Of a stretch of DNA of 64,000 bases, positions 17,521-64,000 are shown piece by piece (position 1 is the stretch's first letter; each line of letters begins with the position of its first letter). A program made the translations under genes and the position numbers. The stretch is from Hyphochytrium catenoides. Taxonomy: Eukaryota; Protista; Hyphochytriomycota. The notes under the pieces are model-generated. The model was not told where the DNA came from and did not search any database. It was given only the letters and a program-made list of their open reading frames with translations. The stretch is from assembly GCA_900088475.1 (NCBI GenBank), contig FLMG01003792.1, positions 1 to 64,000 of the forward strand. Reading direction: 5' to 3'.

Positions 17521-18654
17521 GAGCCATCATCGGAAGTCGTTAGAATCTTTCTATGAAGTGCAAACACCTAAATGTATGTGAATGATCACCTCAGGAGGGG
17601 CTTTCAAAAAGCTTTGACGCAACGACCAGCGGCCAATGCACCACAGAGAGCCACCTTCTTCCTTCGGTCGGGATCTCATCTTTCTTCTCCTCGTTGCAGG
17701 AGTATGATGGGATGCTAAGGAGGTACACTCGCAACTGAAGATGAACTGAAAATAAGAAGGTATCGGCAGTCACACAAGCAGAAGATGAGATAAATAGGGC
17801 CAGCTTTCCATCTCAAGGTGCTCAATTAAGAGGGCAAAATTAGCAGCAGTTGATACCCACTACTATACTGCTAGGTACAGCTGCTTAAGCTACGGCTTAG
17901 CCCTCATCATCAGGACCGCTGAACAGCTCATTCTGCAAGTTCATTATCCAAGGACAGGTCAGTGCAAAGTTCAAGAGCACACAGAGGGATGCCAACTAGC
18001 CATCGTCGGTGCATTTAGAACTCATCTGGAGCACAAGGATTCGGAAAGCCAGGAGTCGACGTGCCTCACTGCTTCTTCATCTTGTGTATCCATCGTGCGT
18101 GGCGTACTTCCTCCAGAGATGAAAGAGGTGGTTTACGGAACGACCATATTACGCTTCTCGCCTAGCCAAGCAAAAACATTGGCCACCACTAACCACTACT
18201 CATGTGTCATCGTAATTCTTCACGCACCTACGCGGGGCAGTAACCCTATCCACCGCCATCACAGGATTCTCGTCTGTTTTTTAAGGATGCAAGTTAGCCG
18301 AGCCCGAACTACTACTGGTCATACCTACCTGTTCATCTCACGGTGGGTCCATTAGAGTCGGTAGCACTGACGACGTAGGAGTTTTACGTCACTGCTGGGC
18401 CGTAGAAGATGCTAATTAGTCTTCTTCGGAGTCCTAACCTTTGCTTCGGAGAGCTACCGATATCAAACGCTAATAGCGATGACTGGGGTAGAAAGGGATA
18501 TCCTGACGACGTGGATAGCTTATAGTCGTTGCATACATTTCTAGGATAATTGTAAAGTGGGATATGAAGATTACTTTTGAAAAGAAGAAAGGCAAACAAA
18601 ATAGCGACTACTACGAGTGATGACGACTGCTGCAGACGATGATAATTTTATCTA

Positions 18655-22660: not shown

Positions 22661-23941
22661 ATGTCGCCACCTACTGATAAGCGCCGCCGGCCATTCCTCC
22701 TCTTTGGAGGAGTCTCCTCAGCGCTGTTGTCACTCTTCATCTCCACTTCGTCTTGGAATATAAGCCTAGCGCAGCAGTCGGCGCGGCACTATTCATGCCC
22801 CTTTCAAGACGTCGTGGCTTCGCCCCAATTCCAAATTGAACAGCTTCAGGGAGTTTGGTTTGAGATTGGCAACACCTTCATTGATAGAAGTCAACAAGAA
22901 GCTGCAGACCAGTGCACGTGTGGCTCATATCGGTTTACGCTGCCAGATGACCTTAGGGATGATGTCGACGGCGATGATACGCCTCCAGGCGGCCAGTGTG
23001 CCCCTTTGGAGCAGGACACCGACTATCCTGGGAATGATCTTGGAGAGACCCAACGAAATAACTCCACGCAATGCTGTCAGGACTGCCGCGACCTAGATGG
23101 CTGTCAAGGCTTTGTGTGGACGGACTGGAACGCAGGAACATGCTGGTTGAAGAGTTCTCTCCCTCAAGAAAGGCAAACCAGTCAGCGAGGAGTGATGGCG
23201 GGCCGCATCCCTGAGGCACAGAATGGCAACAACAGTCAAGAAGAAGGGGAAGAGACCAGGAGTTCTGTCCGTGTGGATTATGTCTGCACCGCTGAAAGCA
23301 CCATGGTTATTAGAACCGGCAATGCCTCACTCCCTCTCACGCGCAATAACGGTATTTTCGCTGTCGTTTGGCAGCAGTACCAGAACGAGAATGAGACAGC
23401 AGGAAACGACCCAAGTGCCAGTGACGGAAGCGAGAGGCAGGAGTGGCAAAGAATGTACCCTGGAGGAGGAAATATGCTCGTCCTTGCGTTGAAGCAAGGT
23501 ACGATAATATAGATGGAAAGTCGGATGGTGTACGATGCTTACTAAGATCGCTTCTTTTAATGTTGTCACTGATGATTCTAAACCGTAGGAGGTTCGGAGG
23601 ACGGGGGAGACAATGAAAGTGGAAGTGGCGGTTATCTTGTTCTTGGATCACCTTGTTACTTAGGTGCCCGCATCCTCTCGCGATCACCTGACCTCTCTTC
23701 CGACGAAATGAATGAAGCCGTCTCCGTCCTGCGTGACAGGAATTATCCGTTGGACATTCTAGACTTCAAAAGAGTTACAAGTATGGAAGCCAATTGCGAT
23801 TCTGTGCAGCAGGCCTGGGACAATCTTCTTCCTACCAGAGAAGGCGGTGGCCAACCCCAAAGTCAAGTCAGGGAGGAGGGAGAGACAAACGACGAGGGCA
23901 ATCGTGCCTTAAGGAGGATGAGTTTACTTGTTGGATTGTAA
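22661..23941 (+). CDS. Secreted lipocalin (ApoD/Blc-like) with an inserted PAN/apple domain; 2 exons: 22661-23498, 23589-23941
   Basis: Signal or anchor peptide; lipocalin SCR1 CP..FQIEQLQGVWFEI..C; PAN/apple DTDYPGNDL..CCQDC..GCQGFVW..GTCWLKS; after splicing, SCR3 ARILSRSPDL followed by a helix and a C-terminal Cys. Confidence 0.85.
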
Positions 23942-30528: not shown

Positions 30529-33049
30529 ATGAGTGACGGCAATGGAGCTTCAGGGGGCGGAGGTGGTGCGGAGAACCCCTTTGCGGAGCGAGCTCAAAAT
30601 TACTCTAACTCTTCGAGTGAGTTCTTCACTACTCTCATCGCCACCGGCGCAGTGGGATTAGTCCTACTCGCACTCTTCGTTTGTCTCAGGAACAGAGTAA
30701 GTTCGCAATATTGCAGTATCTATCGCGGGAGCAGCTAAATGACGACTGACCTCTCTCTATTCCTGGTGCTTGTTCTCCCTCCATCCTCTGTACTGTCTTC
30801 CATCAATAATTCTCATCCTGCCTGCACCTTTCTTCCATCTTCTCTTACAGCGGCCACACCTTTACATCCCCAAGCTGCTTCTCACAAAGGAGACTCTACC
30901 ACCGCCTCCTTCGTCCATATTCCGGTGGGCTCTTACCTTACCGCGTATACAGGATCAAGTTATCTACCAGCACGCAGGGCTAGACTCGCTCATTGTCCTT
31001 CGCTTCCATAGGTGAAAGAATACTCTTCTACTAGTTCTCCTCACCTCCTCACCTCTTCATTTCTACAAGATATTGTACCGTTGAGCATCCTTCATCTCCA
31101 CTGATTGCTTTTCCACCTGCAGCTGTGGTTATTAAATTTCTTTGCTGAAGGTTAAGTTTCAGACCGTCGTCGCCTTCATAACTTTTGGGGGGGCTAACGT
31201 CAGCTGTTTTGGCAAGATGCACCTCGTTATAGCTTGATCTAACTTCCGCTGAAGGTTGGTCGTGACCACTCTTGGCCTTTTCGCTATATATGGACTGGGT
31301 TGCCTCATTCCAATCTATGTCACCGGGGGCCAGGGCCAGAGTGGGATGAACAAGCTAACCGTTATGAACGTATCTGATTCTCAAGATGGACGGGTAAGCG
31401 ATTTCTCTGAGTCAAACCTAGCGATAATAAGGCAAAAGTGAAGAAGAAATGAGAGGCAGTTCCTACTCCTTTTGTTTGATTCCCTTGACGTTCACCTACT
31501 ACATCGAGTCACCATTGATACCCCTGCCCCTATCGTCATATAGAGACCCCTTAACTCCTGCAAGGTTGCTGTCTCACCCTTGTTCAGTCTTACCTAACCC
31601 GCCTTGTTGTACACTTCCCTTTCTCTTCCGTGTCTTTCCTCCTCTCTTCTGATCTCTGCGCCCGATCCCTGCAGTTATGGTCGACATTGGTTGGGGTCTA
31701 CCTCCTGACGTTCCTGGTCCTCTTCTTCCTATATCGAGAGTATAAGGTCTTTGCCTTCTACCGGGATCTGGATCTGAAGCGCATTGAACCTCGAAGCTAC
31801 ACCCTTCTTGTTATGGACATTCCCAGGGAAAAGAGGAACAGAGCGGAGGTGACCAGGCTTATGGAGAAACTCTTTCCAGGACATGTTCAGGCTGTGCATA
31901 TGGTGGTGCCCAAGGTAATAAGGCGGCTCTGCTCACCAGGAGGCCAGCACTCCGTTCCTTTCATCAGCACCATGCTCCGCTGGTGCGCGCGAATAATCCC
32001 TGCCATTGTCTGCTCAACCTCCTCTCCTGTCTGGCTACGTATGTCGTCAAGCGGTCTCCTCTATTCAACACGTCTTGTCTCTAGGCAAAGCGATTCTGAA
32101 CTACTATCGCGTCTCTCTTCTCCTTCCATTAAATGAACGCTCATGCCTATTTCCTAAAGGATGATCTCGCAAGGGCTGTTAAACAGCATGACGCCGCAGT
32201 CATTAGCTATCAGGCGGCAAGGCTAAAGGAAGATACAACCGGACAGAGGCCACAGCATCGCTTGCGCATGTGCGGCCGGAAGACTGACTCTATCTCCTAC
32301 TACGAGGAGGAGGTGGAGGACCTAGACACCCAAATTCGGGAGCTTCAAGATGATGTGCGCCTCCGAGTACGTCCGTCCACTTGCTTTCCGACGGTTGGCG
32401 GTCGTCGGCTAGCCCTTATCAAATTCCTTTCGTCTCTTCCGTCCTCACTTTCCTGGTTCATAGCGAAGACCTTCTTGGTCTTACTTATCAACCAGCGGTG
32501 CCCTTTTCCCTTCTTTGCTTCCCCCACTGATGCTCGTTTCGCTTGCTTCCTCTTCGTGCCGTCCAACTAAGTCTTCTTGCCGGACCTCTGTCCTCTTGCA
32601 GGAGCCCACACACTGCTGCTTTGTCACTCTGTCTCAGCGGAGCAAGGTCATAGTCGGAAGCCAAACTCGTCTTTTCAAAGACCCCTTCCACTATGAGATG
32701 TTCGAAGCACCGGATAACAAAGATGTCATATGGGAAAACCTAAAGATTGAGAAAAGACAGCGATCTGTTCGCTTTATAGCTGTCTCCGTCATCGTTGCTG
32801 TCCTGCTGTTCTTCTGGTACATTCCCGTGGTCTTCGTTAGCGGTCTGTTTAACATGGATAACTTGACATCAGCCTTCCCGTTCATGGAGTCAGTCCTCGA
32901 CTCCTCGTCCGTGGTCAGAGGTAAGGGAGAAGCTAAGACGAGGCCGTCCCTTAAGCCTATTGCTTTGCTACTCTGGGCACACCCTGCCACTTGCGGATAT
33001 TTTTTCTTCAAACTCACTTTCTCTCACATGCTCTGTCCCCCCCCCNNNN

Positions 33050-33086
<37 letters not shown>

Positions 33087-35069
33087 TCCTCTCTCTGCAT
33101 TCAACATCCCTCTGCCTCTTTCTTCCTGCTCTCTATGGTTTTTACGTGCCTCTTCTTCCATATGGAGTTACTTCCCCTACACTTTGTCTCTCCCTGTCTC
33201 TATCTTCTCCAAGTGTCTCTTCCATGGAGTTGGCTCTCCCTTAAGCTACGATTACTAAGACTGGCATGTGCGCTAACCACCCGTTTTCAGGTCTCATTAG
33301 CGGGCTGCTTCCTGCTTTAGTGCTCAAAGCGTTCATGGTCCTGCTGGTTAGGATTGTTACCTTCTTGTCGAAGTTTGAAGGGCGATGGACATGGAGCTCC
33401 GTCGCTCTTGGTACTCTAACGAAGCTTTTCTTCTTCAACGTACGTAGGCGGAGAAGGAAGCTGACAGCCAGCTTCTGCCTCTCTCTTGCTTGATATATAT
33501 ACTCTACTATCGTTGACGCTCTCTTTATTTAGTCTGCTCGAAACGGCAGCAAGCTCCATCATTGAAGTGCATGCGCAAGTTCCGCTCTCGCCTCAACCTT
33601 TGTGGATCCCTCTGTTATGTACTTTATCATCCTCTCTCCTCCATCCTCTCCTATCGGTCGCCGCCACCAGCTTGTGATTGACGATCCGATGTAGATATTG
33701 AACATTCTCTTAGGAGTTACGCTCACGGGTACCGTTCTGGACATCATAGACACAGCAGTAGACAACCCTTCGGAGCTGGTCGAATTGTTGGCTGACTCTC
33801 TCCCGCGCCAGTCAACTTTCTTCTTGAACTACGTTATGCTTAATGCCTTCGTGGTCCTGCCTTTTCGGCTTATGAGACTGAAGAGGCTAATTATCAATTG
33901 GATGAAGACGAGGAAAGCGACAACTAGTAGGCAGAAGAGAGATGCCTGGGTACCAGGTTAGCTAGAGTTTAGGAGTCTGTTCTGTCCATTCTTGATGCGC
34001 TTGCTTCCTTGCTCAAGTAGTCTCTCTCTCTCTCTCTCCACACCACGCTCTGTTTGCCTCCACCTCTTTCTGTTCAGTCTCATTGTTGGTCGTTGCCTCC
34101 GTTCTAGCTACAACTCTTGACTCTTCTTCAGCCGTCTGCTTCTTAATTCTTCCCTCCCCTAACTCTCCGTGGACGCCAGATTCTTCCCTATGCTGTTCGA
34201 CTCCCTACTCTATCTATGACCTATAAATGATCCCATCACTGTTCCTTTCTTTGTCTAGGAGAGCCACGTCACGGGGTATTTGTGGCTCAGGATCTGTTGA
34301 TCCTCGCTATCTCTCTGGCCTACTCTTGCATCGCTCCTCTTATGCTAGTCTTCGGCCTATTATACTTCGTGCTGGCATACTATACGACGCTTAACCACGC
34401 TCTTTACGTGCACATTCCGCAGTTCAGGTGAGCTTGACAGGAGACTTATCCCTTATAGTCCTCGCTTAGAGCTCACCTTGTTCCCAAATGTAGCACCGAA
34501 GGGCGTATCTGGAACTCCATAGTACGAAAGGTGATGATCAGCACTCTCATCTTCCAGCTCCTCATGGCTGGACAACTGGGGATAAAGCGGGCGGCAGTGA
34601 GCGCTCCGCTCGTTGCTATTCCAGTCGTTATGACCGTACTCTTCTGGCGCCGCATCACGACGTTCTATAAGCCCAGCACCACGAAGCCATCCCTGGAGGC
34701 AGCTGTTGAGCAGGATCTCTTTGAGATGGAGGTTAGACAAGAGAACTGTTCGTCCTTCTATCTCTTCCCATGTGTCGCTGCAGTCAGGACCTGGCCTCCA
34801 TTCACCTAACTTTTGTCCCCTTTCCCACTGCCTTCCCCGTCCTCCCTCCGCCGATCCTCAAGAACCAGCAGCAGACGGCTCAGATGGCCGCTGCTACCGG
34901 CCGTCCAGCTGGTCAGCCTCAGGAGGGTCTTTCAGAGAGAAAACTCGTCAACGCCTACGATCCGTACAACTATCCGCCGGTGAAGAAATATCAGCTCTAT
35001 GAAGAAGATTCTCTTAGAAACCCGTATGAAGAGGAAGACAGTTATCAGCTCTGGCAGGGGAGGCTATAG
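30529..35069 (+). CDS. OSCA/TMEM63/CSC1 (ERD4-like, RSN1/DUF221) calcium-permeable channel; 11 exons: 30529-30696, 30851-31011, 31255-31393, 31675-31914, 32160-32366, 32602-32920, 33291-33439, 33695-33956, 34259-34427, 34494-34731, 34863-35069
   Basis: LYIPK, AGLDSLIVLRF, YTLLVMDIP, CFVT, APDNKDVIWENL, FWYIPVVFV, GLLPAL, LADSLPRQSTFFLNYVML, YSCIAPL and ALYVH. All GT-AG junctions splice in frame. Confidence 0.93.
33037..33085. repeat. Poly-C / N gap / (CT)n microsatellite inside OSCA intron 6
   Basis: Direct reading. Confidence 0.9.
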
Positions 35070-46880: not shown

Positions 46881-47364
46881 CACTGTTTGCTGCACTTTGG
46901 ATGCTTCTCCTTTCATGCTTCAGGTTGGCTCTCCACTGGCTTCTTGAACAGCACTTTCTGGCTCTATCTACCCTCTAAGGACATCCTTGACACCCCACAG
47001 CCCACACCAAGCAAGGTGATTGCCATCATGCAAGCGATAAAGTCAAAGAACGGTAGGAGATGCCACCCAGTGAGGTGCCATCATCGTCCAAGGATGTGCT
47101 TTGTGGGGTTGAGAGGAAGGGTGCAAAGAGGCCGAACTGAAGGATGGAGTGACGCCTGAACAGCAAAAGAGCATCCAGCTTGATGATGCGACCTCCTCAC
47201 TACATCTTTTTCCAGTGACATAGCAGGGACGCGTGGCGCATCAAACCTACAGCTGCCCGCGTATTCTTCCTCCTCCAACTAAGGCTATAGCCTCGCGCTA
47301 CTGAAGCAAACAACCCATACCGCGCAAATCTGAAGCCTTGCTACCATCTCTTCAATCCAGCACA

Positions 47365-48444
47365 ATGAAGGGCAACACCTCTGCTATAACCTTTCTGCTC
47401 GTCGCCGCATTGGCGCTGTTCGCAGCTACGGTCACTGGAAGGCCAACAGGAGCTCCAGCGTGCCACTTTAACCTTCAGGCAGTCACAAAGGGCCATGGTC
47501 CCCCCACAGACCTTCCTGAGGTAAAAATCTCACTCTCCGCGCAATTTTATGTTCCGGGCAAAGCGCTGAAGATCTCTGTCACCGGTCCCACCGGGTGGAA
47601 AGGGCTCTTGATGTATGCTAGCGCTCAGGGAGGAGCCCCAGCTGCTGGGGCGCCAACTGCTGGGGCACCAGGTGCCGGCGCTAACCCACCCACCACGGGC
47701 CCTGCCATCCCTGGCGGTAGTGCACCCACCACAGGCGCTGCCGCCCCTGGCGCCGCCGGTCTACGCCACCTCCAGCTCGATCCAGGAGCGCCAGGGACCC
47801 CACCTCCTACAGCCGGTGGAGCACCAAGTGCACCTGCAACTGGCGGCGTTGCGACGCCTGGAGGCACCAAGAATCATGTGGGCAAGTTTATCAACCTTCC
47901 TGGCGGCTTCAAGCCACAGACTCAGCAGGCGTGTACCACTGGACAGGTCACTAACGAAGGCCTAGACGCTCTCAGCGGAGCTTCCACCATTACGCACTCC
48001 GACCCAACAGCCAAACAGGACACTACATCGTTCATCTGGCTGGCTCCTACAAAGTCTGTTGGTCCTATCACATTTTCTGCTGTGGTTAACATGGGTGCTG
48101 GGCCTGTTAGCAAGTGGATGCTGGTTGACGTCGTGGTCAAGCCTGGCAAACTAGTGAGTGGACCATCTACTGGAAGTTCTGCAGGTGGAAATGGTACGAT
48201 TGCGGTCACCCCTCCAACTCCTACTGCAGCCACTGATTCGTCATCATCGAGCACACCTACCACTGGTGACAGCAATCTCCCCCCAACTGACGACTCTGCT
48301 CCAACGGACGGAACTTCGGGTGATGCCACTGGCGGAGATGCCACTGCAACGGCTGATGGTCTTGCAGCATCAGGTGCCGACTCCAACAGGGGCAGCTGGC
48401 TCTTGCCAGTGTTCGTTGCAATGCTTGGCGTTAGCTTGAGCAAA
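47365..48444 (+). CDS. Reeler-domain cell-surface protein with signal peptide, S/T/D stalk and GPI-type tail (stop codon hidden in N gap 48445-48504)
   Basis: RPTGAPAC...H, YVPG..ISVTG..WKGLLMYA, HVGKF, C..TITHS..K...FIWLAP...GPITFSAVV are Reeler motifs. C-terminus SWLLPVFVAMLGVSLS. Confidence 0.85.
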
Positions 48445-49029
48445 NNNNNNNNNNNNNNNNNNNNNNNNNNNNNNNNNNNNNNNNNNNNNNNNNNNNNNNN
48501 NNNNCGGCGAAGATCGCTGAAAGTGGCATCGAGCTCTGCTGCTCATTCCAAAGATTAAATAAATCTCAACAATATGAATCCCATCATCTCAGTACACCGA
48601 CTCTTCTTTGGTTTATCCGCTTCCTTTGCACTTATTGCCCCAACTTTGGGCTATCACCCTCGATGTCATCTTCCGCTCTTCGTATTTAAGCAGAGTTGTC
48701 CTCCTAGTTGACATGTCCTCGTTTATCATGTCTGTTAATTCTAAAGCGGCAAGGTGGGGCAGAGCTGTGTTAAAGGTGACTAGCTTGTACTTGAATTTGA
48801 TTCTTGACTGCTGCTGATCAGAAGATCCTCACCCACGGTCGCTACTGCTAATGCCACTTAGCAACGAAAAGATGAGTGCAGAAGATCGAATCAATGAAAA
48901 GTGCGATTGAGTTAGGGAACTTTGTTTTCCCTACAGATACATATGTTCTCTCATCATCAACTGCACTGCTCTGTCGTTTTGAAGAGAAGCTTGACACTTA
49001 GCAACAGATCACCCTTCACGACCTCTAAC

Positions 49030-52000
49030 TTACTGACGGAGTCTCGCAGAGGTGTCTCCGCCGGAGAGAAGGCGTGCCATCTGATCACGATAACTTATGT
49101 CTGCATCCCCGTTCATATAGCTTAAACCCGCAGCCTGTAGGGTCTGGCAGTAGTCGGGCTTCTCGATGACGTTGAGATCTACTAGGCTCCGGCATATGGA
49201 ACTAATCCACATTGCCTTGATCGGCGTTGGCCTGAGAAGTCTCACTTCCACCTTGATCACTGACCTTGACCTCCCATTGTCCGCTAGGTTTGGCAAGCAC
49301 AACCCTTCAACCTTATTCAACAGAACGACCACGTGCTCCTCATTGAAACCAAATATCTGAGTGAGATGCAGGAGCACAGCATCATGCAGGAAGTGGAGCT
49401 GATCCCGGCTGGTCCACCATGAGTCGGAGTTATGAGCAAAAGCGAAGGCAAACTTCGTCGCGATGAATCTGGCGGGAACACTTCTTGTCTGCATCAGGCG
49501 TTTCTGGCGGATTGTATCTCCTGGTATGCACCGCGTTGCTAGCTTACTCATGGGCTGGGACCTGTATAAATAGTCATCCGGCGATTAAAGACACTTAGAA
49601 GATAACGAAACCGACATTGGAAAGACCGAGAAAATTATGACTATGGACAGACAGAAACCTTACCGGGTATAAATGAGTCGAACCACGCTGACCACTGAGC
49701 CGGAAGCTTGGTTTCCAGAGGTTTGTTGACCAGAGTCAATTCCTGGCTGCTGCGACGTCTTCCACTTGATAGGAAGAAGTTCAGACAGTCCCGGCTTGGG
49801 GCTTGAAGTGCTGCTGCTATTCATAGTACCAAGAAGGGGTGCTCTACTAGAGATAGTAGAGGGTCGTGGCTCCCACAGGAAACTAGATAAAGAATCTTCA
49901 CTATCCATCGATAGTGACTCGAGCACAAAGTCTTCCGCTACCTTGGAAGGGGCTGGCGGTAGAGGACTATGAAGAAGGTGGACAAGAAGAGTGACAGAAC
50001 TTCCACGTGTCAGATTCAGAGGCTCCGGCGTCTGGAATACCAACTCTTGGTCTCTCATAGGCAACAGACAGGAGAGGGTGAAGTTGACCCTTGCAAGGCC
50101 TTCAACGTAGATAGTTCCTGTAGCCTTGACGCAAGCGCCTCCCTCCGGTCCCCATGCAGCTGGAATGCTGACTCCTTTGAGGGTAAGGTCACGCTGAGCA
50201 CGTAACGAATAAGCGACACGACGATAGCTCCAGCTTTGAGTCAAAGAAAACGGCGTGCGGTGGTTAAATAGAGACATGGCTGACCATAAGCCATCTACAC
50301 TTTGATGTTCCCTGTTCACAAAGCAGAGACAACGTGAGCCAGTAACACAAGGATTCCATGTCGGAGGCAATTACGCTCACCTTTCAATCATCAGACTAAG
50401 TGCAGGATAGCTGCTGACTGGCTGACCAGAATCGGGGCCAAGATTCGCGGGCAAGGAGTCAAATCTTCCTTGGACGTTTAAGAAACGGGCTCCAGAAATA
50501 ATCATCTCAGGTTGCCCTTGGGTAAGGCTGGTCGTTGCGCAAAGGACATTAGAAGTTGCTGTGATGAGCGAGTACCGTCGACCAGGAACTAGGTCCCTGG
50601 ATACTCCAGGGAAGCCACAAAGTCTTCCATCTACTTTTCTAGATGGGGACAGCTGTGAGACCCTGGCCATGGTTAGAAGTATTCCGTCCTCAAAAAGGCC
50701 AACGTTGGGCTCTACTGCGTAAGGAGGGACCCAGGGAATTGCCGAGAGTCTCGTTGGTGAAAGGTATTCTTGCTGGATGCAGATACCACTAAGCTTTGCA
50801 GGTACGAAGAGATTAAAGTCTAAGGTCACATAGCCCTCGTTGCTTGAGACAGCGCAGGATGTTCCAGCAGGCAATGGGTTTGGTAGGCCCGAGTATGCTG
50901 TTCGAGGTGCTTCACTCAACATAGGGGCCTCTGGCCTCCTACGATTTAGCAGTTAAGGTGGCCATAAGTATGATGTCTTGATCAAGTAACATGAAGTGGT
51001 AAAGAGACAGCACAAAGGGCAAAACTAACCTTGTAAGGATGGGTGTCAGTGGACTTCCAGACTCTAGGTTGAGAGATGTGCCTAAAATGTCATCCTTGAA
51101 GCTTTGGGGACCAGAGAAGGTCCCAAAGGCATTGATAAAGGTGGAGTTAACTGAAGCCACTGATGCGGTAAAGCACCTATTGGATAGAACAATATAGATT
51201 GGACCTGCTTGAAGTAAGATGGGCTCCGCGAAGTATTCGGCTGCACCCTCAAGAACCTGGCTTCTATTTGAAAGCGTTAGGCTTCCTAATGTTGGGAAGA
51301 AAGTCTTATTAAAAAATCGGAGCAGGGCCAGACTGGTTGATGTCCAGTCTTCTCCAATGCGGTAAGGAGGGGCTCCAATACCCAGACCTGTCACTAATGC
51401 TTCTTGCTTGACTGTAAATGCAGTAGCGGTCCAAGCTGCGCTGCATGTAGAAGTGTTAGTTGGCGAAGGTAGCCACGAAGAGAGGAAGCCAAAGGCCCGA
51501 GGTGTGGGCTGTGGTGGCTCTAATGCGACAATATCAAATAATGGTGCAGTGATGGGGCCGCAGGATTGAGTGGCCGAATAACCGCTGACCCCTGGTGTGT
51601 TAGAGAATGTGGACGTGTTGACGGCATCGCCTGTCTGGTTACTCTCAAAAATTCTCTGGCAGGAGAACGAAGCCCACCGCAATTTCATCTGAGAGGCGGT
51701 AGGACCTGTCGCCGTCTCCCGATTCTCTACGAGTTCGAGGTACCGCATGGGCAAGACTGCAGTTAAGGAGTAGTGACTTCCGCCATTTAGTTGTGCAGAT
51801 CCACTTAGGCCGCTAAAGCGATAAGAATTTACGCGCTGGGAATCGGATGAGACATTGCTCTGGGCTAGGACTTTGCCTGTCATGGTCTCGTAGAGTCGAA
51901 GGGCTACTGATGCATCTCCCAAGCCTTCGCACAACAGGGGGCTTGCAACATCGAGAATTCCTAACCCTGTTACCGTAATGTTTGCGACTGGGACGAAGTC

Positions 52001-55000
52001 CATGCGAATCTCAGTGCTCTCTCGCACACACCGCGCCGCCGCGACCTTTGTTGGAGGTACGATATTGCCAATGATGGACTGCATCGCACTGTCACCACCA
52101 TACGGAGCAGCAATGAATGGCGTTAGTAAGATGGCTGGAGAATCATCCAGACCTCTTCGACTTACCTCTTGGGCACGAAAGAGAATACCATGGATGGCGT
52201 GCCACCGTCATTTACGCGCTTTGTTGGATCAAGCAGCTCAGCTGTGAGGTTGAAATGTGCTCGTTCTTCTGGTGTCTGTGGCAGGTTTACATAGCTATAG
52301 GAGTTCATGGTGTAGGGAGCTGAAGGACTTGCGCTAATGCCAAACGGAAGAGAGATATTAGGTAAAATAGCCCGCAAGTGGTATTGAAGTCCTCGAGTCA
52401 ACAGCTTCCTTTCGATAGGCTCCAAGAAGACCGATCTTGCGCTGTCAGCCGTAGCTGAGTATCTGCTTACGTCCGATCGAGCCAACAGCTTCGAACCCTG
52501 GAGCAGCTCCACCCTGATGCTAGAAAGATTCGTACCTGTGGGCATCATCATAATACAGAAGGCTAAGCAACGAGGTATGGTCACCTTATTCCTTGGAGTC
52601 TACTAGTATCAAAACCTACCACTTGTATTGAAAAAATACGTGGGCACACCGAGGCCGGTTAAGGTTATGTCAGAAGTCGGGGTGAATTGCATCGCTCTCG
52701 CCACAAAAACCATAGAAGCGTTCGACATCGGCAAGCCCCATCCTTGTGTGTGAGTGGTCTCTAGGAGATACTGCACGGAAAGATTGCCAAGGGGACGCTC
52801 CCTTGGGTATCTAAGATTGAAAAAGCAAAACGAGATGAGTATGGGCCCACGACTCATCGCCATCACGTTTCTTTCTCCATACCGGGTATAGATCGCCGAC
52901 ACAGGCGAGCAAGCTTGATAAGGCAATGCATTGTCCCACGATTGAGTCCAGAAGTCCCGTGGAAGACTGGTTGCCATTGAAGAAACGGCCATTCCGTACT
53001 CACGCTCATTGTTTGGTTCGATGGCTAATGGATGGAATTCTCCTAACACCGGGTCATACCTGTCTGAGCCCGCACAACTCAGTAGCACGGGCTCGTGCAT
53101 AAGAGCAGCCATGAAGTACATTTGTCCACGTCTCAGTAGAAGAGGCGACTCAAAGGAGGTTACCAGTCGGTTTCGAGTGACGTCTGACCAGTCCCCTAGG
53201 TAGACCGAAGCCAGCCGGGATCCGCTGATATAGGGTGCTGAGACCGAATAGGCCTCATAGATTCCAACGTGGTACGTCGGAGTTTGTGCCTCCATAGTAA
53301 ACGGTAGAGCCACGGCTGCACCAGTGAGTAGAACATCCTGTAGCGGCGTGAACTGGTACCCTACAATCAGGCTCCTCTCTTCATGTAACTTAGGACCACT
53401 GAATGGTACTATTGATGCAGGAGCAAGATACCCTTTAGGTTGATAATCGGGGCCGATGGCCTTGGATTTCCTGATGGTGATAGATGCGGAATGAAGTAGG
53501 AATCAGACATAAGTTATGGCGAGAAAAAATAAAAGTCGAGCTTATTATCTCTCAATAAGGTACGTACCGTGCAAACAAGAAGGTCAGTGGGACTTTGGGT
53601 GACTCAAGCACACTGCCAAGAGTAGTGGTGTTGTTATCTACACTTGAAGTCAACATTGTCACCATAGTATGTGTATAGTGTGTCACGGTGAGCTCGAAGG
53701 GCAGCACACCAGAAAGAGTGTAACGCAACCCAGGTTTAAGAGAGATTGACTGCCCCAAAGCACCATAGGCCATGTAGGAATTGGCTCCTTCATAGTCGAA
53801 TGAGAGTGAATCTGACATAGAAGGCGGAGGCTCTATCGACAACGAGAAGGAGGTCAGTAACTTCCCGGATCCTTGCTCGCTCAACTGGAGGGCGACGTTC
53901 GTCATGGCGGATTGAGTTAAGTTAGACCAACACCCTCCCGAGGGACTTGGAAGCACCGACCCAAAACTGGTGACCATTAGCTCTTGCTGCACAGTGAAGG
54001 TGAACGAATAGCTGGTCTGACGCTGATTACATAGGTGCACACTGGCAAATTTGAGGGCCGCCTCGCCAACCGGACCAGGTGCATGTCTGATAGGAGCGGA
54101 AAGGGAATCACTTCACGAGGAGACTCGATCCTGCACCGTGACATCTTAGCTTACCTTCGGAATTTTATAGTTAGGACTGGCACCTCTACTTCATCCCGCA
54201 AACCCGGACCGGGGCAGAAGCCACTCCTAGCTGTCCTATTACCAGCATACTGCAGGACGAGTTGTGGATCTAAACTAGCGGGAAGAGAGCTTGTGCCCTG
54301 ATAATATGCTATCGTGAATGCCGTGGTTTGACCACGGAATTGGGGTGACCTCTCGACATGGCGAGGCCCAGAACGGAGATATTTTCCCGGAACAGTAGCG
54401 GCCAGATAGTACGTCGTACCAGCGTGAAGAGTAAAGGTTCCTGGAAGATGGTAGTACGCATAGTCGTCGCCTTCGTGAAGAAAGGCAGCGAGTACGGACA
54501 GTCTGAAGCGGGTAGACCCTCGAAGTACCAAATTCTCATCGTAGATCCCCAGCTCCAGCCTTCCCATGTCTACGCTCGGGCTCCCCAGTTGGTGGAAGGC
54601 GTCCTCAAGAGCTTCACGCAGCAGGCCTACAGCTAACATGGATGTTGATATCTCTGGTTTGACCTGAAGCAGGGCAAGAGTATGGACTGTCTGGAGATCC
54701 TTTCGCACGACGGGGAAGAAGCCCTTTTGATCAAGGAAAAGAGGTGTTCCGACCCCCGAATAGAAAGAGTTGGACCTAGGAGAAAAGCCAGAGAAACGTA
54801 AGGGTTATTGTAAGGGTCGGCAGCGCAACTCGTCATGCCTGCTTCTAACCTGGTATACATGAAGCCAGCGCCATTCCAGAGGCCAGATATGGCCCAGGGT
54901 GCATTTCTCACAGCCGAGGTACAATTGAAGGATGTCCGCATGTCACATACAACGTCAAAGCGTATGGACTCCTCGGAGAACATTGACCATACTTGCGTTT

Positions 55001-58000
55001 GTGACATCTGTATAGTCAAAGACAGAGATGTCCGCAGAGCATACCTGCGCCCTCGGCGCAGTCGCACCGGTGGCCTCACTGACATATACCTAAAACCTCT
55101 AATCAGTTTTCCTCTTCTTGAACTAAATAACCCCTCAGCGACCACTTGATTTTGGTCATCCACCATCACTACAGCTTGAGTATCTCTAGTGTGGTTGGTA
55201 CATCCTAGGCAATTCTCCTGATTTAGATCTACCAGGCCCAGCGACGTTATAAGGATGTCTTCGTAAGGGTAAAAGTCAGTCGACATCAGCGGTCCAGCTA
55301 AGCTGTCCACCCTAATTACACTTGTATTCTGCATTGCTACTGCTTCAGTATCAAAGTCTTCATCTCTGTCGGAGGAAGACCTGACCAAGGAAAGAGCCAG
55401 TCAGAAGAATTAACGCCAAGCAACACAATTGAGCACTAGGTATCGTTTCAGACTTACCCGCCTCCGAAGGAGAGTTGTGGCACATAAGGCAGCAAGCACT
55501 GCGCGTTCCAGGTCAAAGAGGAGGTGACTGAACAAGAGGGGACAGAACATGTCCTCGACTCTCGGCGGAAGGCACTAATATTCATGCCGCGCACTCCCTC
55601 AGCTCTAACCGCGGCGTCCACCAGTTCCCAGTGTAGAGGTTTTGGGAGACCGCCTAGTTCTAGACCGCTACACCCTTCAAGGACTGAGGGGTAGCAACCA
55701 GATAGACCAAGTCGGTAATCGATCACCTTCACGTAATTGTTGCAGCCACTTGCCACATTCTGTGTAGCCAAGGTCATTGGAAGCTCAGCGGTCAGAGTAT
55801 ACGTGTATCCGGATTCCAAAAACAAGCTCCTGTTCAGGCTGAGATAATGACTGTAGGGGAACAGTGTGACGTTGACTAAGAGAGAGGGCGGTGATCCGCT
55901 CTTATAGATTGAGATTGGAATGGCAGCGGAAATGAAGTCCTGCTGCAACTTCATCGTCCTGTCTGGAGTAGGGAGAGTGTAGGAGTTGATGAACCCTTCC
56001 CGCTTAAAGTACAATCCCTGCACCTCTATTGTTCCCTTTGGTACGATAAAATCATAGCCCACTTTGCTGGTATCTACGGAAAGCAGAACCACAGACGCTG
56101 ACGCTGGAGGTGGAGCTGTTGGAGGTGGAGCCGTTGGAGGTGGGGCCCCACTGGGTGGTGGAGAAGGTTTTGACTGGGTATCATTACTGGGTGCCTCGCT
56201 GCCATAATGATTTCATAGAGGTTTTGGGCTTTATTAGCTCCTTGGCATGGGGAAATTAAAAGAAAAGCCTTTCACAAACCTGGTAGGAAGATACGTGAAT
56301 GTCATCAAAGCAGCAGGGTCCAAGGTCCAGGTCGAGTTCTCCCTTGTGTACCACATCGCGGTGCTGGAGTAAGGGTCATTCGCATACAGCCAGTGGCTAA
56401 TCCGGTGGCCGATCGTGATGTTCGGGTTGACCAGGAAAGACGCAGCCTGACGACTAGAGACATTGAAGACTGGGAGATTAGCAATTAGGAGGTATGAAGT
56501 ATTTGCCAGCAGTTGCGGCGCGGGGGGATAGTAAGCCGGTCCGCTAAAGCCACTAGTCCCGGGATAAGTGTTGAACGAGTTGTAGGCGTTTGTCTCAGCC
56601 CTTCGAAATCTGCCTCCAGCCGCCTCTACTATCGGATCAACTACCTCAACCACAGCGCGCGCAACTTCATAACCATATAAAGCATTATAGATGGCAATAG
56701 TCACGGGCCCATCCCAGCCTGAGGTTAATCCGGACGAACAATTATTCCATTGTGGCTCAACCACACCCAGCCCAGTGAGGGTCATATTCAAGCTTGGCCT
56801 GAACTCGTATCCCAACAAGACTCTACCCGGCTCTAGAGGTGCTCCGCTGATGGGTTTATTTCCTATGCTGGAGCTGGAAGGGCAAGAGTCCAGTAGCAAT
56901 TGGCCCATACGTCCAGCTGGAGTTCCCGATGGTTCTCCTGAGGGCCTGCAGAAGGGCAAGGGGACTTTACTTTGAACTACAGATCTTTGATGTATCGTAT
57001 TGAAAGATGACAGGTTTACCTCACGATAACCATGCTAACCGCAGAGAGATTTTCTCTAGCTAGCAATAGTTCGGCATCCCCTTTTATTGGCCACCAAGAG
57101 GGAATTTCAGCACTGTCAAGGCTTGAAGTCGTGTTAACTCTCGGCAGGGAGAAGAGAGTAGCATTGCCGACCCCCACAAGACTTGCTAAGGTTGACGTAT
57201 TTATCTCTCCTGCCGGTCCCAAGACCCCTCCATTGGAGATGTTTGCGAAAGTTGTTTGCCTGCGTCTCACAAAGGGAAGCAGAGCTAGAACGCCATAACG
57301 GCCTCCCGCTGGGAGAACCATCCCTGAGGGGAGGCCTCCCACATGCTGCATTTCCATGATCGCTGACCATCCACCTACCACGATGGATGCGAGAAGAGTC
57401 ATGTTGCCACTATCCGTAAGGTTATAGACTCCAATTTTCCCATAGAGCTCACGAGCATTTGCTAAATAGGTTCCATTTCCAACGCAAATGTCACCTGAAG
57501 CTCTGTATAGTCCGAAACCCTTAAGGAAAACAGTGCTTTCGGTTGAAAAAGTGAAGCCAGAATAGACACCGGAGTGGACCTTGATGTGGCAGATATCAGG
57601 ATTCCATCCAGTAGGGTTAGAAAGTGGGAATACGCTGCCGCTGCTCACCATTTTCGTGGTCGGTACCCTACAATAAGCCACAAGATTTGCGAAGTTAGTA
57701 GGACTTACAGCGGATGCAGACGAGGACGGAAAGGGCGCTAAGCTAAGCTCGGTACCTGTAGTAGAGGAAGTCTAGGAGACCCTTTATAGATTCATTTCTG
57801 CAAAATGATGCGAGACACGGCTGAAGGTTGAGGTTATACAATGTGTAGGGTAGACCATAATTGGCAGGTCCAGAGGACCCTAAGTCCTCGTAGCTATTTC
57901 GTGATGGGAAAGAGAAGAAAGACGACTCAATCTGTATAACGTCATCAGGACTCATCGTTGATGGAGGTTGCCCATTGCCATTTGATCTTGATGTGTTCAC

Positions 58001-61000
58001 GAAGTACGGAAGTCTGCCTACAATTGTATACCGCTCCCCTTTTCGCAGAATCATAGAGTTCTCAAATCTTAGGGAAGAGTAAATCGTCCCGCCCAACTCC
58101 TGCAGTCTGCGGCCGCTCCCCGGCCCCACGCGAGCGGAGTTTAGAAGATAGCCACGAGCATCGTAAATGCCCAATATACTTGACCATCGGGCACTGTAGA
58201 CCAGCTCTTCCGATTCCGTAGCGTCATACAGTCCCCTATCATTACCATTTATCACGTTGGTGATATTCTCTTCGTCACAAACCCCAGTCCATGCTACGGG
58301 GCTAGCAACGCCCATTGCGGCAATGTAAATATCAGCACGAACTGTGAAGGAGAAACCCGTTTCGACTGACTCCGCAACTCCACAGGAATCAAACGTTGGC
58401 AAAGGCTGGAATGGTTTGGCAAATGAGTACTCATAGCCCCTGTTGAAGGTGCGAATGAGAGGCAGGAGAGCGTTACGTTGATAGTTCAGTCGGGGATTGA
58501 TAAAAACAAGGCCACCGCTTTACACCTAGACCTATGCGTGATTGGATACACTTACCTCGCATATAAAATGTCAACGATTGGTAGCCAGGAGCCTTCCGAG
58601 TGCCAATAGTCAGATCCCGTTCCTGAAACTATCTGAGTAGCCGGCACTGGTGGGAGAGTCCAGGGGAGATCGTCCCCAGGAAGAAATCCCGTGGCTGGAG
58701 TGCGGAACTTGGAGAGTACGGTTAATCTCTCGTTCCAATTGGAACTTGCACTTCCTACAATTTCATAAGAGACCAGGGCAGTGACCGCATATCTTCTTCC
58801 CGGGTAGAGCGTAGTGGGTCCTTGGTCAAGGATACTGTAAGCAGCTCCCTCTGACATGTACTCCGGTCTAGCTGATGAAGCTGATCTATGAAAAATTTTG
58901 GTGGAACCAAGAAGGAGCCCTGAAGTCATATCATAAATGCCGACGGGTACCGCACTCTCCAACGGTAAAGCTCTCTCGCTACCATATACTGTTACTGGAC
59001 TCAGGACTCCTACAGCCGTAATCACCGTGGGCACGCGGACCGCTACTTCAAGGCCAACGAAGGAGCTGATAATAGGGTCTACTGTTCCATATACTGGGCT
59101 GCCTGAATAGTAGCTGATCAACGACTCACCCTCAACCGAACCAGTTGCTGGCCTGTATATAATACGAAGCGGTAGAAATGAGGAAAAAACTATGGGCGTC
59201 AGAGCGTGACAGAGATGCTGTGTCACTCCAATACTGGTACTTACCGCGTGTACAGGAAAGAGCTTGGGATGCTGATGCCTGCACTACCAAGTCCTTCTGA
59301 ACTGTTTCCACTTAAGAATTCACCCTGCCCTTCAGTGTTATTCCCAACATTTACCGATCTCGTAGCCCAGCCGTGAAGAAGGCGGCCTAATCTGAACCCC
59401 GCTCCCAAGAACGCAGGTGCCATTCTTATAGGAGCCGCAGAAAATGTGTCATACGGAGCCTCCACAACGATGGCATATTCAGTGTCTGGCCTCATTTGTA
59501 CCGGCGGCAGTACAGCCTCGTATAGGTAGCTGTCCTGATAGTGACTACCTGCTGTCACGGAGACAGAATGGACCATGATATTCCGCTGAACCTCCCATAC
59601 CGAGACTACAACTTGAGGGCTTAGCGAGTGTGGTGGAAAGAAATATTCTGAGGCTCCAAGAGCAGTCAGAAGAATACTTCTAGTTGGCCAGAACGTGATT
59701 CCGCTCGTATTCAACAAGGGTAAGTTCGAAGGTTCTTGACCAGCAATTATCACTGCATTTTCCCCCGCCACTGCAGTGCGCAACCTACGCGGAGGACGTC
59801 GGCAAACTAAGAAAGCACCAACGCACAATCAACTGTTGTTGTGTTTCACACGTACCTGTCAACAAACAACCTCGGCCTGTGGGAATAGTAAAGAGCACTT
59901 TCCGATCCGTCGATAGTAGTGTTAACGGTGTCATGAAGAGGTGGCTGACATGTTCCATTGACGCTCATGTCCATGCAAACGCCAGTTAGGCTCATGTTGA
60001 TGTGCGCCACCAGACGGGTCCACCACCACTCCAGATTGCCTTCGCCGCTCAACGGCTGGTAATACTCGGACTTAGCCAATGGCCAGGGCAAGGCTTCGCC
60101 AGAAATGTTCGGCGATGTGGTAGCGAGACCACCCAAATCCACACCAAACCTGTATCCGGACACTATGACGCTCTCTAGATTGGGGTTGGACGTACTTTCA
60201 GCCGTTAGGAGGACCATGGGCAACCGGACAAGCACACTATAACTCTTCCCTGGCGTAAGCACAATCGGAGGCTCTACTCTTGCGTGAGACTTGTAAGGCG
60301 CCAAAGTGATATTTGCAAGTGATGCTCCCGTCATCGTCTCGTAAAGCCAGAGAGTCAGAGGGCTGGACTGGAAGGTAGACTGCAGTAATGAAAGGTCAAC
60401 AGAAGTGTTTGAGTCTGGACTTGCACCATAATGAGAGATCACGTGACTGATTGTCCTGTTGAATTCAAGACCAAAGAGCTTCCAAGGACCGGATCCCCAT
60501 ACGGTGAAGTCGTAACCAGCAACATTTGGAACCGACGCAGCATAGAAAACTGGCTGTTGGATGACGGGTCTGGGTAGATCAGGAAAAGGTGTTGGTATGC
60601 CGCCTGTCGTCCCATTTGTACTTGATTGGTTGTCAACCTGCTGCCATTGGCTGTGAAGTAGATTATTAGAGCATTCACGCAGTATATTGCTTCTAAAAAC
60701 TACTAAAACGTTACCTTGGTAGCGGTGGAAGGTACGAGAAGCTTAGCAGCCGAGCGGGATCCAAACAGAAGTCATTCACGCTGTAGCTGGCGTTGACGTC
60801 CTGCGGATGCCAGACATAGCGGGACGCGTAGAAGGAGTCATAGCCTACGCTAAAGGGCCCACTCGATAACCGAGACCCGACGGTGATATTACTTCCAACA
60901 AATAGGTTGGAGGACTCATATGCGCAGCTACCGGGATAGAAGGCAGTCGCTGGGACGTTTGCCACTAAAGAGTAAATTCTGTTTGGCTGCAGGACCACTC

Positions 61001-64000
61001 CACTGCCACTCATAGTGTTGTTAACGTTGTACGGCCAGGAAAGAGTAGAGGGCATGATCGGATGAAATCTAGCTCCAGATACATCGCTAAGACGGGGGCT
61101 AAAGGTCTCAATATCAAAATCTAGAATACGTCCTGCATACTTGTCAAAGAGACCGACCCGAATGGGCTCGCCCCAGCCCCTCGCGCCATTGAGAGTAGCC
61201 TCTGACGTGGCATTATCCCCACATGTCCAGAGAGGCTCCGCTATTCCAAGGCCTGTTACATTTAATGATGTGGAGAGAGTGAATTCGTAGCCGATGATGA
61301 CTCTGCCAGACGCGTTTCTGGTGTCGGGATTGCAGGAGTGCAACACGACGTCTGGTAGGAGCACCGCAAGCTGCCCTGGTGGCGCAGTGTACACCCTGAT
61401 AGGCGTGGAAGGATAGGAATAACGAAAGGCGTCCAGTAAGAGGTTTATGCCTGCGCTTTCAATTTCATTGCTTACCTTGAGAATAATATTGATACACTAG
61501 GTAGTAGTGGTCCTGGCGTGGTGCTTGGCGTGGACCATAGCCAGGGCGGAAGAGAATGGCCCCACTTCATGAAGTTTTCAGGAGCGATATAATCGTTGTG
61601 GGACCATCCTGAGAAGAGGAGCGAGCCAGAATTCCACCATGAGCCCCATGAAGAATAAGATGCTCCTTGATAGCTCGAGTTCGGTCGCGATATATTCGAA
61701 TACGCGCGGGCAAAAGGCAGAACTGCAGCCACTCCGTAACTTCCTCCCTCTGGTAGTAGAATAGGGGTTTCAAGGCCCCCAGCTTGCTGCATGCCATTTA
61801 TGTCCGAAGACCATGGACCGATCATCATGCTCGCAATCAGGTACGGACTCGTTGGATCAGTGAGGTTGTATAGCCCTAAGTTAGTAAGCACGTTCCTGGT
61901 GTTCAATGTAGTATGGTTTCCAAGGCGACAAACTTCGTTGTAAGGCGGCAGCGCCACACCAAAGCCTTTTATGAAGACCGCCGCCGATGTCGAGAAAGTA
62001 AAGGCCGAGTATGAACCGTTCTGGGCTCTGATGTGACAGATGTCGCTGCTGCTGCGATAAAGGCTCGGCAGGAGTTCGCTAGAGTAAACTCGGGAACTGG
62101 GTTGTATTCTGCCGCAGGACAAAGACAAAGAGTCTGTGAGTGCGATCGATAGGAACTTTTACGGGTGGTTTACCAACAAACTGAAGAGATACCTTATGAG
62201 CATCATATTCAGCAAGCCGCGTGCTGCGCTAGTGGTACAGTTTCCAGGACTGTCAGAGCAGGACATAGTAGTATGGTTGATGTTTAGGTATTCCAAGCGG
62301 TCAGGAAGTCTGTGTTCGCCTCTTATGAGATCGGAACCGTCGGAGACTCTTTGTTCAAAAGCTCTTCCGATGGTAAGGACAGGCAGCCCTCCGGAAGCAT
62401 CGTCAGACAGTTCAACGGCCGCGGTTGCAAGTCTCGTTAACCTGAAGGGTAGGACTCCGACGAGGGTATACTTTTGCCCTTTTAGGAGAGTAAGAGAAGA
62501 CGGGATGGACGATGATGTCGAAGCACGAAGAACAGTTATACTACCGAAATAGGACACGCTACTACTCATGCTGGCCTGGGCCGCGGACGGATCATGTTCG
62601 TAAGCAAGATCGGTCGGGCCAACCACCGCGGACGCCAGCAAAGTTCCACCGTCGTCATAAAGACCCATTATGCTTGACCACTTGACGTTCCATAGAAGAC
62701 CTTCCTTGTCATCGATGCATGGATTGCTAATAATCTCGTCTTTGGTTGGAATGTGAGTTCCCATCTCAGTAAGTGCAAAGTCAGCAGTAGGGACAAAAGA
62801 AAACCCAGTCAATGTCTCTTCCGGAACGTAACAGGCATTAGCCATCTTTGGGCTGAAGTAGGGCCTGGCAAGTGTGTCCACGGCAACTTCAAAGCTGGAA
62901 GTGCTACAAGAATAGAAAGAGGATGTGAGTAGTGAAGTGACCCCACATCTACGTTTCGGGGTTACGTGATCATGATTGTTCCAAGCGCTCTCTAATTTGC
63001 GTACCTGGAAAACAAGAAGTCCACCAGTGGAACCGTTCGTGACATGGAGGGATCATCGTAGTTGTATAGACTACTCGATGCTAGGACTGGAGCAGTCTGG
63101 GGTAAGGCATGCCCAGGTCCGAACCCTGATGGTGCCGCTCCGTAGAGCCTTGATACAACTATAAGTCTTTCGTTATAGTTGGAGTAGACGTAGCCCTCGA
63201 CCACATAGGAGACAAGTGCCAAGATAGCATAGCGTCTTCCCGGAAGCAACGTTATTGGTCCATCCTCTATGACGTTGTAGACTGCTGCACCAGAGGACTG
63301 GCTTGGACTGGCAGAGCCAGAAGATCGATGAAAAACGTTCGTTGAGCCCAGGAGGCTACCGGCGGTTAGGTCATAGACGGCCACGGGTACAGCAGACTCC
63401 AAGGGTCCGGATCCTTCTCCGTAGGTGGTCCACGGACTAACTATTCCCAACGCAGTCACCGACGTCATGACTTGCGGAGAGACCTCGATGCCCGTGAAGA
63501 AGCATGCAGCTTGTTGAAGCTGAGGGTGGAGGCCGCCTGGTCCGCTAGAGTAGGTGCTATACCAGAGGGGAGATTTTCCGCTAAGTGTTCCAGCAGCCGA
63601 CCTGTCAAACCCAAAAGAGAATTGTCAGTGCAAGAGATTGCCCAACCACCTACCAAAATAACTCATAATGGAATAGATTCTACCTCGTATATAGAACAGA
63701 CATAGTTGGAGCCTCGACTGGTGTTGCCCAAATGTAGCCCTGATCCCATGCTGGAAATGGGCTAGCAATGGGTCCCAAATAATCAAAGCTGGACTCCATT
63801 CCCCACCCTCCTGACATAAACTTTGGTACATTCGTGTATGACGTGTTCATGATAACCGCATACTCCGCGCCGGCCATGAGCTGAATGGCGGGCAAGACAG
63901 CTGCATACCGGAATCGGTCAATGGCAGCATTGGCGAAGTTAACCGTCACATTGGCAAGCAGAATGCCACCTTGTTGTTGAGCATAGAGTGAGACCGTGGC
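49030..64000 (-). CDS. Giant modular protein, 5' end outside the window; 22 exons in window: >64000-63684, 63601-63005, 62903-62193, 62108-61476, 61395-60715, 60650-59856, 59784-59245, 59152-58556, 58439-57756, 57667-57020, 56945-56280, 56198-55458, 55380-54850, 54775-54155, 54086-53568, 53470-52883, 52810-52620, 52562-52166, 52088-51030, 50938-50381, 50311-49664, 49561-49030; about 21 DUF4082-like modules plus a distinct C-terminal domain
   Basis: Hand splicing at GT-AG sites gives an uninterrupted frame of about 13.25 kb (about 4,400 aa). Each module has G(F/Y)xF...(L/I)TGLG(V/I)...(V/I)G(I/L)YD...G.LL...L..G..Y.(L/V), and most end in Y-x-R or a similar Arg at the intron. Many N-x-S/T sites. 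Confidence 0.88.

Follow-up and report, generated by a model that had tools for sequence, protein, structure and literature searches.

A giant gene of Hyphochytrium catenoides encoding about 22 modules remotely related to DUF4082 and probably grown by exon-intron and block duplication

The window analysed here is a stretch of 64,000 nucleotides (nt) from Hyphochytrium catenoides (assembly GCA_900088475.1, contig FLMG01003792.1, positions 1 to 64,000 of the forward strand), one end of which is occupied by the 3' part of a single giant gene. With a probability of roughly 0.7, this gene was interpreted as encoding a secreted or surface glycoprotein of at least 4417 residues that contains about 22 lectin-like modules related to the Pfam family DUF4082 (PF13313), and that grew through the duplication of exons together with their introns, and of a block of several exons.

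Structure of the giant gene

An earlier, sequence-only reading of the window had proposed one giant gene and listed its exon lengths, without giving a strand. The coding strand was identified as the minus strand, read from position 64000 to 49030. Between 64000 and 49033 this strand was tiled by stop-free pieces of 105–422 codons each, in changing frames, with neighbouring pieces bridged by short GT..AG introns. A search for chains of such introns that matched the noted exon lengths, starting from these open reading frame (ORF) pieces, produced a spliced model of 22 exons and 21 introns (57–116 nt, all GT-AG), which reproduced the listed lengths exactly (Table 1). The coding sequence of the model was 13,254 nt long, or 4417 codons, with zero internal stops and a TAA stop codon at 49030–49032; the gene's 5' end falls outside the window, past position 64000, and exon 1 is truncated by the window edge there. 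Several acceptors had in-frame alternatives, which may lengthen or shorten a few exons by multiples of three but would leave the phases unchanged.

Phase 2 applied to 20 of the 21 introns, which fell at module boundaries as previously read, interrupting the final codon of the module; this codon specified Arg in 15 cases, Ser in four and Gly in one. The exon ended in AG in 16 of these 20 cases, AG being also the usual splice consensus at exon ends. Seventeen internal exons were 2-2 symmetric, with lengths divisible by three, and the sole phase-1 intron separated a 191-nt from a 397-nt exon, a pair that totals 588 nt. When read through, 19 of the 21 introns contained an in-frame stop, and splicing is therefore required. 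The two exceptions were intron 13 (54776–54849, minus strand), which is 74 nt long and stop-free, and intron 16 (52811–52882, minus strand), the 72 nt of which are a multiple of three, such that retaining it would insert 24 residues in frame. In every exon, codon usage favoured the frame of the model, with log-odds per codon of +0.13 to +0.33 compared with -0.18 to -0.65 in the other frames; the signal was weakest, at about 0, in the last exon, which encodes a non-repeat tail.

An open frame of 4417 codons is far beyond chance; its continuity across 21 GT-AG junctions, together with codon bias in frame, confirmed the previous observation of one giant gene. The weak coding signal of the tail exon, and the prediction of the gene model from DNA, would also be compatible with several independent genes or with a decayed pseudogene array. 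Yet no stop interrupts the frame of 4417 codons at any of 21 junctions, all of which have canonical splice sites, exons are generally stop-free up to exactly the homologous codon, codon bias is in frame throughout, and nonsynonymous differences between modules fall well below synonymous ones, leaving this explanation with hardly any probability at all.

Module homology and duplication history

The part of the gene within the window encodes about 22 modules of roughly 170–265 amino acids (aa) each. A shared pattern aligned all 17 single-exon modules, at a mean identity of 19%. A hidden Markov model (HMM) was built from these 17, leaving exon 1 and the two halves of exon 19 out of the alignment; its matches in the window were confined to 49663–64000 on the minus strand, and it recovered exon 1 and both halves of exon 19. 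Each module begins with a short linker that is partly rich in Pro, Ser and Thr, continues with a well-folded core of ~110–130 residues and a variable region, and ends in a closing strand. The pattern of one module per exon was broken at exon 19, which holds two modules, and at exons 17 and 18, which form a single module with an extra, phase-1 intron. The missing intron between the two modules of exon 19 suggests intron loss.

Homology among exon products, as detected by BLASTP, was clear at a spacing of six exons, while neighbouring modules were the least alike. A score matrix calibrated by shuffling resolved six module types, A to F, which occurred in order twice and then in a fading third round (exons 13–16). 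The sets within this super-repeat were exons 1/7/13, 2/8, 3/9, 4/10/16, 5/11 and 6/12 (shuffle Z = 8–47); BLASTP homology among exons 1, 7 and 13 was weaker than for other pairs six apart. Of the two halves of exon 19, the first was similar to exons 17 and 18 combined and the second to the D type.

Partners within the super-repeat were saturated at synonymous sites (proportion of synonymous differences, pS, 0.72–0.83), with a proportion of nonsynonymous differences (pN) of 0.37–0.56. No direct or inverted DNA repeats beyond chance were found in exons or introns, where the only repeats were of 16–32 nt and at chance level. Synonymous saturation and the loss of DNA repeats show that the duplications are ancient. 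Judged by pN and pS, the module copies have been kept under constraint at the protein level since they were duplicated.

Since all 20 phase-2 introns interrupt the homologous codon, a single founder intron that was duplicated together with its exon best accounts for them; uniform phase and multiple-of-three lengths result from the copying of an exon-intron unit, and not from 20 independent coincidences. The preferred reading is therefore that one exon plus its phase-2 intron would have been duplicated in tandem, and that a block of six exons would later have been duplicated in turn, all copies inheriting the phase and position of the founder intron. Growth by exon duplication had been proposed by the sequence-only reading, and is borne out by the correspondence between exons 1–6 and exons 7–12. 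The same reading had considered the phase-2 symmetry notable; the symmetry is real, but a special meaning for it is unsupported, as it follows from the copying of a single exon-plus-intron unit.

The gene thus has the attributes of a repeat protein formed by tandem duplication, with modules bounded by introns of the same position and phase, and a multi-module block that was itself duplicated. Copying of several domains together has been described as the common way in which repeats expand, and exon borders within linkers as typical for extracellular families (PMC1553488). For human genes, internal tandem duplication is a frequent origin of successive symmetric exons; among these, the (2,2) class is the rarest (4.5%, or 671 exons), compared with 29.7% for (1,1) (PMC3632108). 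Giant repeat proteins such as titin (Ig/Fn3), nebulin (seven-module blocks) and EGF/Ig proteins share with this gene the tandem homologous modules, the duplication of multi-module blocks (of six modules here) and the single-phase introns at module borders (PMC1553488). The present gene differs from them in its domain family, its 2-2 phase and its short introns. Extracellular modules in animals are typically of 1-1 phase. No evidence was found that the six-module period of this gene matches any partner structure.

A different significance, in part suggested as possible by the sequence-only reading, would be that the symmetric exons serve as cassettes for combinatorial or mutually exclusive splicing of a variable recognition or coat protein. 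As a matter of arithmetic only, the skipping of any of the 17 symmetric internal exons keeps the frame; retention of intron 13 or 16 would introduce no stop and, for intron 16, no frameshift either. Arrays of the Dscam type likewise consist of tandem homologous exons that preserve the frame. In contrast to such arrays, the exons here are not near-equal in length, neighbours are not closely similar, and there are no conserved complementary docking or selector elements in introns. Exon lengths of 519–1059 nt and the low mean identity among modules are unlike interchangeable alternative exons, and no conserved intronic direct or inverted repeats were suited to a docking or selector role. Furthermore, the A–F order was preserved after block duplication with neighbours remaining the most dissimilar, the paralogues are ancient and constrained, with no recent duplication or homogenisation, and tandem duplication alone predicts runs of introns in the same phase (PMC3632108). 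Cassette splicing is consequently very unlikely, and it is highly improbable that the skipping or choice of phase-2 exons generates many surface-protein variants from this one gene. If it did, the gene would represent a splicing-based diversity system founded on a domain otherwise known only from bacteria.

Relationship of the modules to DUF4082

A Pfam scan of every exon returned no family at E <= 0.01, nor at E <= 10. An exhaustive search with the module profile, covering 1.84 billion representative proteins, returned 393 proteins at E <= 1e-3 and 22 at E <= 1e-10, with a top score of 141 bits. DUF4082 was carried by eight of the ten top-ranked or sampled matches that were scanned first, and in the single-domain matches that were checked the matched stretch was the DUF4082 region. 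Among the matched segments, 68 of 78 corresponded to Pfam DUF4082, and 15 had a PEP-CTERM motif. Comparison by hhalign of the module profile with 30 bacterial DUF4082/PEP-CTERM proteins of ~210 aa gave a probability of 98.6% (E = 8.5e-16) across the first 80 core columns. Identity between a module and any match did not exceed 34% over about 100 residues. By profile comparison, the modules are remote relatives of DUF4082, and are not members of that family by the Pfam criterion.

Several elements are common to the modules and bacterial DUF4082: a Gly and a Phe in strand one, then strands of the form hydrophobic-Thr-x-Leu-Gly and V-G-I-[WY]-D, and G-x-L-L-x-S followed by L-x-x-G-x-x-Y-x-[LI]-x-A. 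An all-beta sandwich is predicted for the window modules, an extracellular context is indicated for both, and some bacterial proteins also contain several copies (seven stretches in the match P0002). The window modules differ in being eukaryotic, in occurring one per exon and about 22 in a row, and in adding a variable region of about 60–80 residues and a closing strand. Partner domains in the bacterial relatives included PEP-CTERM, the sorting tail of the type IX secretion system (T9SS), PKD, dockerin, CHB_HEX_C/Fn3_assoc and SASA esterase; in all scanned relatives these partners were of secreted or surface types.

One distant match, P0021, was a protein of 3406 aa in an uninterrupted ORF (contig L001, 1989–12209, plus strand); the contig is phage-like and 14.7 kb long, and a Peptidase_S74 gene adjoins the ORF. 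This context places DUF4082-like modules in giant fibre proteins of phage-like or virus-like type as well.

A word-indexed protein search with exon 8 gave no matches, this search being limited by length such that giant relatives were out of its reach, and scans of metagenome contigs with B-type and D-type module pairs gave no relatives. Hence there was no close homologue in any library searched, neither among the 1.84 billion representatives nor in the metagenome scans, and matches by profile were remote only. Since about 1.8 billion proteins and the metagenome scans yielded no close homologue, the giant protein is probably a lineage-specific component of the surface or matrix in a eukaryote whose lineage has been poorly sampled.

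These searches also bear on the suggestion that exon shuffling has moved the modules from gene to gene as mobile units, making this gene one product of a pool of phase-2 modules. In favour of it, introns of the same phase do bound the modules exactly. However, the modules were absent elsewhere on both strands of the window, where no other gene carried the same module with the same flanking phase, and no relative of eukaryotic type was seen in the protein libraries or metagenome contigs. The relatives obtained by profile were distant (141 bits at best), and those examined had bacterial-type features (PEP-CTERM, T9SS tail, dockerin, signal peptides), one of them lying on the phage-like contig; both metagenome scans were empty. 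Given that intragenic duplication explains the whole pattern, shuffling between genes, which the sequence-only reading had entertained, is distinctly unlikely.

Predicted fold of the modules

AlphaFold2 predicted an all-beta structure of ten strands for exon 8 (predicted local distance difference test, pLDDT, 72; predicted template modelling score, pTM, 0.74). Exon 4, modelled with a 95-sequence alignment, was likewise predicted to be all-beta (pLDDT 63.5, pTM 0.62), with a confident core at residues 30–135 and a poorly modelled stretch at 141–200; the deeper alignment used in this second run brought no gain in confidence. The first 16–18 residues formed a low-confidence linker in both models. 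The models thus favour the beta-sandwich core previously suggested for the modules, for which structure prediction of single exons had been proposed as a check.

Comparison with the Protein Data Bank (PDB) by Foldseek gave only generic beta-sandwich or jelly-roll matches at template modelling (TM) scores of <= 0.5, including phage capsid and fibre domains, PHR, CBM6 and PHM. Neither the module profile nor the DUF4082-protein profile had a significant PDB match; the sole sequence-profile hint was to the PHR domain of MYCBP2 (3gbw, E = 0.016–0.7). PHR domains (PAM/Highwire/RPM-1; 3gbw, 3hwj, 3no8) were the only solved structures with both a weak profile match and a Foldseek match (E = 5e-3 to 9e-2, TM score 0.3–0.5). 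These matches were not significant, and PHR proteins differ in that they are ubiquitin-ligase or BTB proteins located inside the cell, in which the domain occurs once or twice.

Evidence for an extracellular product

N-X-S/T sites numbered 72, compared with 32.5±4.7 in shuffles that preserved composition, an excess of about two-fold (z of about 8). The cysteine count was even in 18 of the 21 modules (permutation P = 0.002), and a pair of cysteines about 35 residues apart recurred near the start of the core. Pro, Ser, Thr and Gly were modestly enriched at module starts. No transmembrane-like segment was found in the 4417 residues, the maximum hydropathy over 19 residues being 1.75, inside a beta strand. 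The tail encoded by exon 22 had no Pfam or PDB match, and no transmembrane or glycosylphosphatidylinositol (GPI)-like hydrophobic end.

Taken together, the sequons, the cysteines and the setting in which the bacterial relatives occur indicate a protein that is secreted, glycosylated and disulfide-bonded. Indirectly, therefore, the extracellular location advanced by the sequence-only reading gains support from the sequon excess, the even cysteine counts and the secreted or surface nature of the relatives. The PHR resemblances raise the alternative of a giant intracellular scaffold akin to PHR-domain proteins, given that the PHR domain of MYCBP2 was the only PDB hint at the sequence level and recurred among the Foldseek matches, and that neither a signal peptide nor a membrane anchor is visible in the part of the protein present. 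This alternative is unlikely, however, in view of the two-fold sequon excess, the even cysteine counts with their conserved spacing, the secreted or surface character of the recognisable relatives scanned and the lack of significance of the PHR matches.

Weighing the interpretation

Several observations count against a secreted glycoprotein of DUF4082-related, lectin-like modules. All splice junctions were predicted from the DNA sequence alone. None of the 17 modules matched Pfam DUF4082 at E <= 1e-3 or even at E <= 10, and the link to that family holds at profile level only. No signal peptide is visible, the N-terminus lying outside the window, and the part present has no transmembrane segment or GPI-like C-terminus, such that the mode of attachment is not indicated. 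The confidence of the AlphaFold2 models was moderate, and the C-terminal third of each modelled module was poorly modelled. Finally, a literature search on DUF4082 produced no more than two mentions in passing, and the family itself has no known function; an adhesive or lectin role for the giant protein therefore rests on analogy.

The product is read as a string of divergent lectin-like beta-sandwich modules followed by the tail of 176 residues. By that analogy, it would likely act outside the cell as a long fibre with an adhesive, carbohydrate-binding or coat-forming role.

Exons and other features of the window

Table 1. Position and supporting evidence of the giant gene and its exons within the window
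Feature	Position	Strand	Evidence
Giant gene, 3' part	49030..64000	-	22 exons, 21 introns, 4417 codons + TAA; stop-free model, codon bias
Exon 1, 317 nt, edge-cut, C-terminal part of A-type module	63684..64000	-	Z = 9 to exon 7, 8 to exon 13; profile E 2e-7
Exon 2, 597 nt, B-type module	63005..63601	-	44% identity, Z = 47 to exon 8
Exon 3, 711 nt, C-type module	62193..62903	-	30% identity, Z = 24 to exon 9
Exon 4, 633 nt, D-type module, structure predicted	61476..62108	-	48% identity, Z = 45 to exon 10
Exon 5, 681 nt, E-type module	60715..61395	-	28% identity, Z = 29 to exon 11
Exon 6, 795 nt, F-type module	59856..60650	-	30% identity, Z = 17 to exon 12
Exon 7, 540 nt, A-type module	59245..59784	-	Z = 13 to exon 13
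Exon 8, 597 nt, B-type module, all-beta predicted	58556..59152	-	BLASTP to exon 2, AlphaFold2
Exon 9, 684 nt, C-type module	57756..58439	-	BLASTP and shuffle score
Exon 10, 648 nt, D-type module	57020..57667	-	BLASTP and shuffle score
Exon 11, 666 nt, E-type module	56280..56945	-	BLASTP and shuffle score
Exon 12, 741 nt, F-type module, Pro/Ser/Thr/Ala-rich start	55458..56198	-	BLASTP and shuffle score
Exon 13, 531 nt, A-type module	54850..55380	-	Shuffle score
Exon 14, 621 nt, module without clear type	54155..54775	-	Alignment and HMM
Exon 15, 519 nt, weakly C/D-like module	53568..54086	-	Z = 7–9
Exon 16, 588 nt, D-like module	52883..53470	-	Z = 15 to exon 4
Exon 17, 191 nt, first part of module split by sole phase-1 intron	52620..52810	-	Spliced model
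Exon 18, 397 nt, second part of split module	52166..52562	-	Exons 17+18 to first half of exon 19, Z = 13
Exon 19, 1059 nt, two modules, no intron between	51030..52088	-	Profile E 5.5e-13 and 1.2e-3
Exon 20, 558 nt, module	50381..50938	-	Alignment and HMM
Exon 21, 648 nt, last module, C-terminal half Ser-rich	49664..50311	-	Alignment and HMM
Exon 22, 532 nt including TAA, 176-aa non-repeat tail	49030..49561	-	Spliced model; weakest coding signal

Adjacent to the giant gene, an ORF of 406 aa (47338–48558, plus strand) showed a weak match to Reeler (21.9 bits, cut-off 21); it runs convergently towards the 3' end of the giant gene, from which some 470 nt separate it, and is overlapped on the opposite strand by an ORF of 180 aa at 48003–48542. 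Elsewhere in the window, a gene for a PhoD-like alkaline phosphatase (8667–10542, minus strand; Pfam PhoD_N and PhoD) apparently consists of two exons and one intron. Its best relatives were bacterial or metagenomic PhoD proteins at 44–46% identity, with no closer eukaryotic relative among the matches listed. A single-exon ORF of 421 aa (18655–19920, minus strand) encodes a Ser/Thr kinase, the best matches of which were animal RSK-type kinases at about 45% identity. Two further ORFs are probably exons of other genes; the first contains a PAN_4 domain (22661–23512, plus strand) and the second the start of an RSN1_7TM (calcium-dependent channel) domain (32515–33258, plus strand). Together with the spliceosomal introns, the kinase, PAN, RSN1_7TM and Reeler-like ORFs clearly mark the window as eukaryotic. 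An Rfam scan of the window gave only a marginal match to the C/D-box small nucleolar RNA SNORD36 (17470–17536, minus strand; 33.6 bits, with the gathering score at 30; E = 0.15), and no tRNA genes.

Implications

Exon and block duplication is a familiar route to giant proteins, of which this gene is a probably lineage-specific example. Knowledge of exon shuffling or of alternative splicing is unchanged by it. The gene does provide a clean example of how an entire gene comes to have a single intron phase when one exon-intron unit is copied, and of how block duplication produces a super-repeat, in this case of six modules. It also adds a eukaryotic version of the uncharacterised DUF4082-like domain, here matched mainly in bacterial secreted proteins, in which the domain is repeated in tandem roughly 22-fold with one exon per module.

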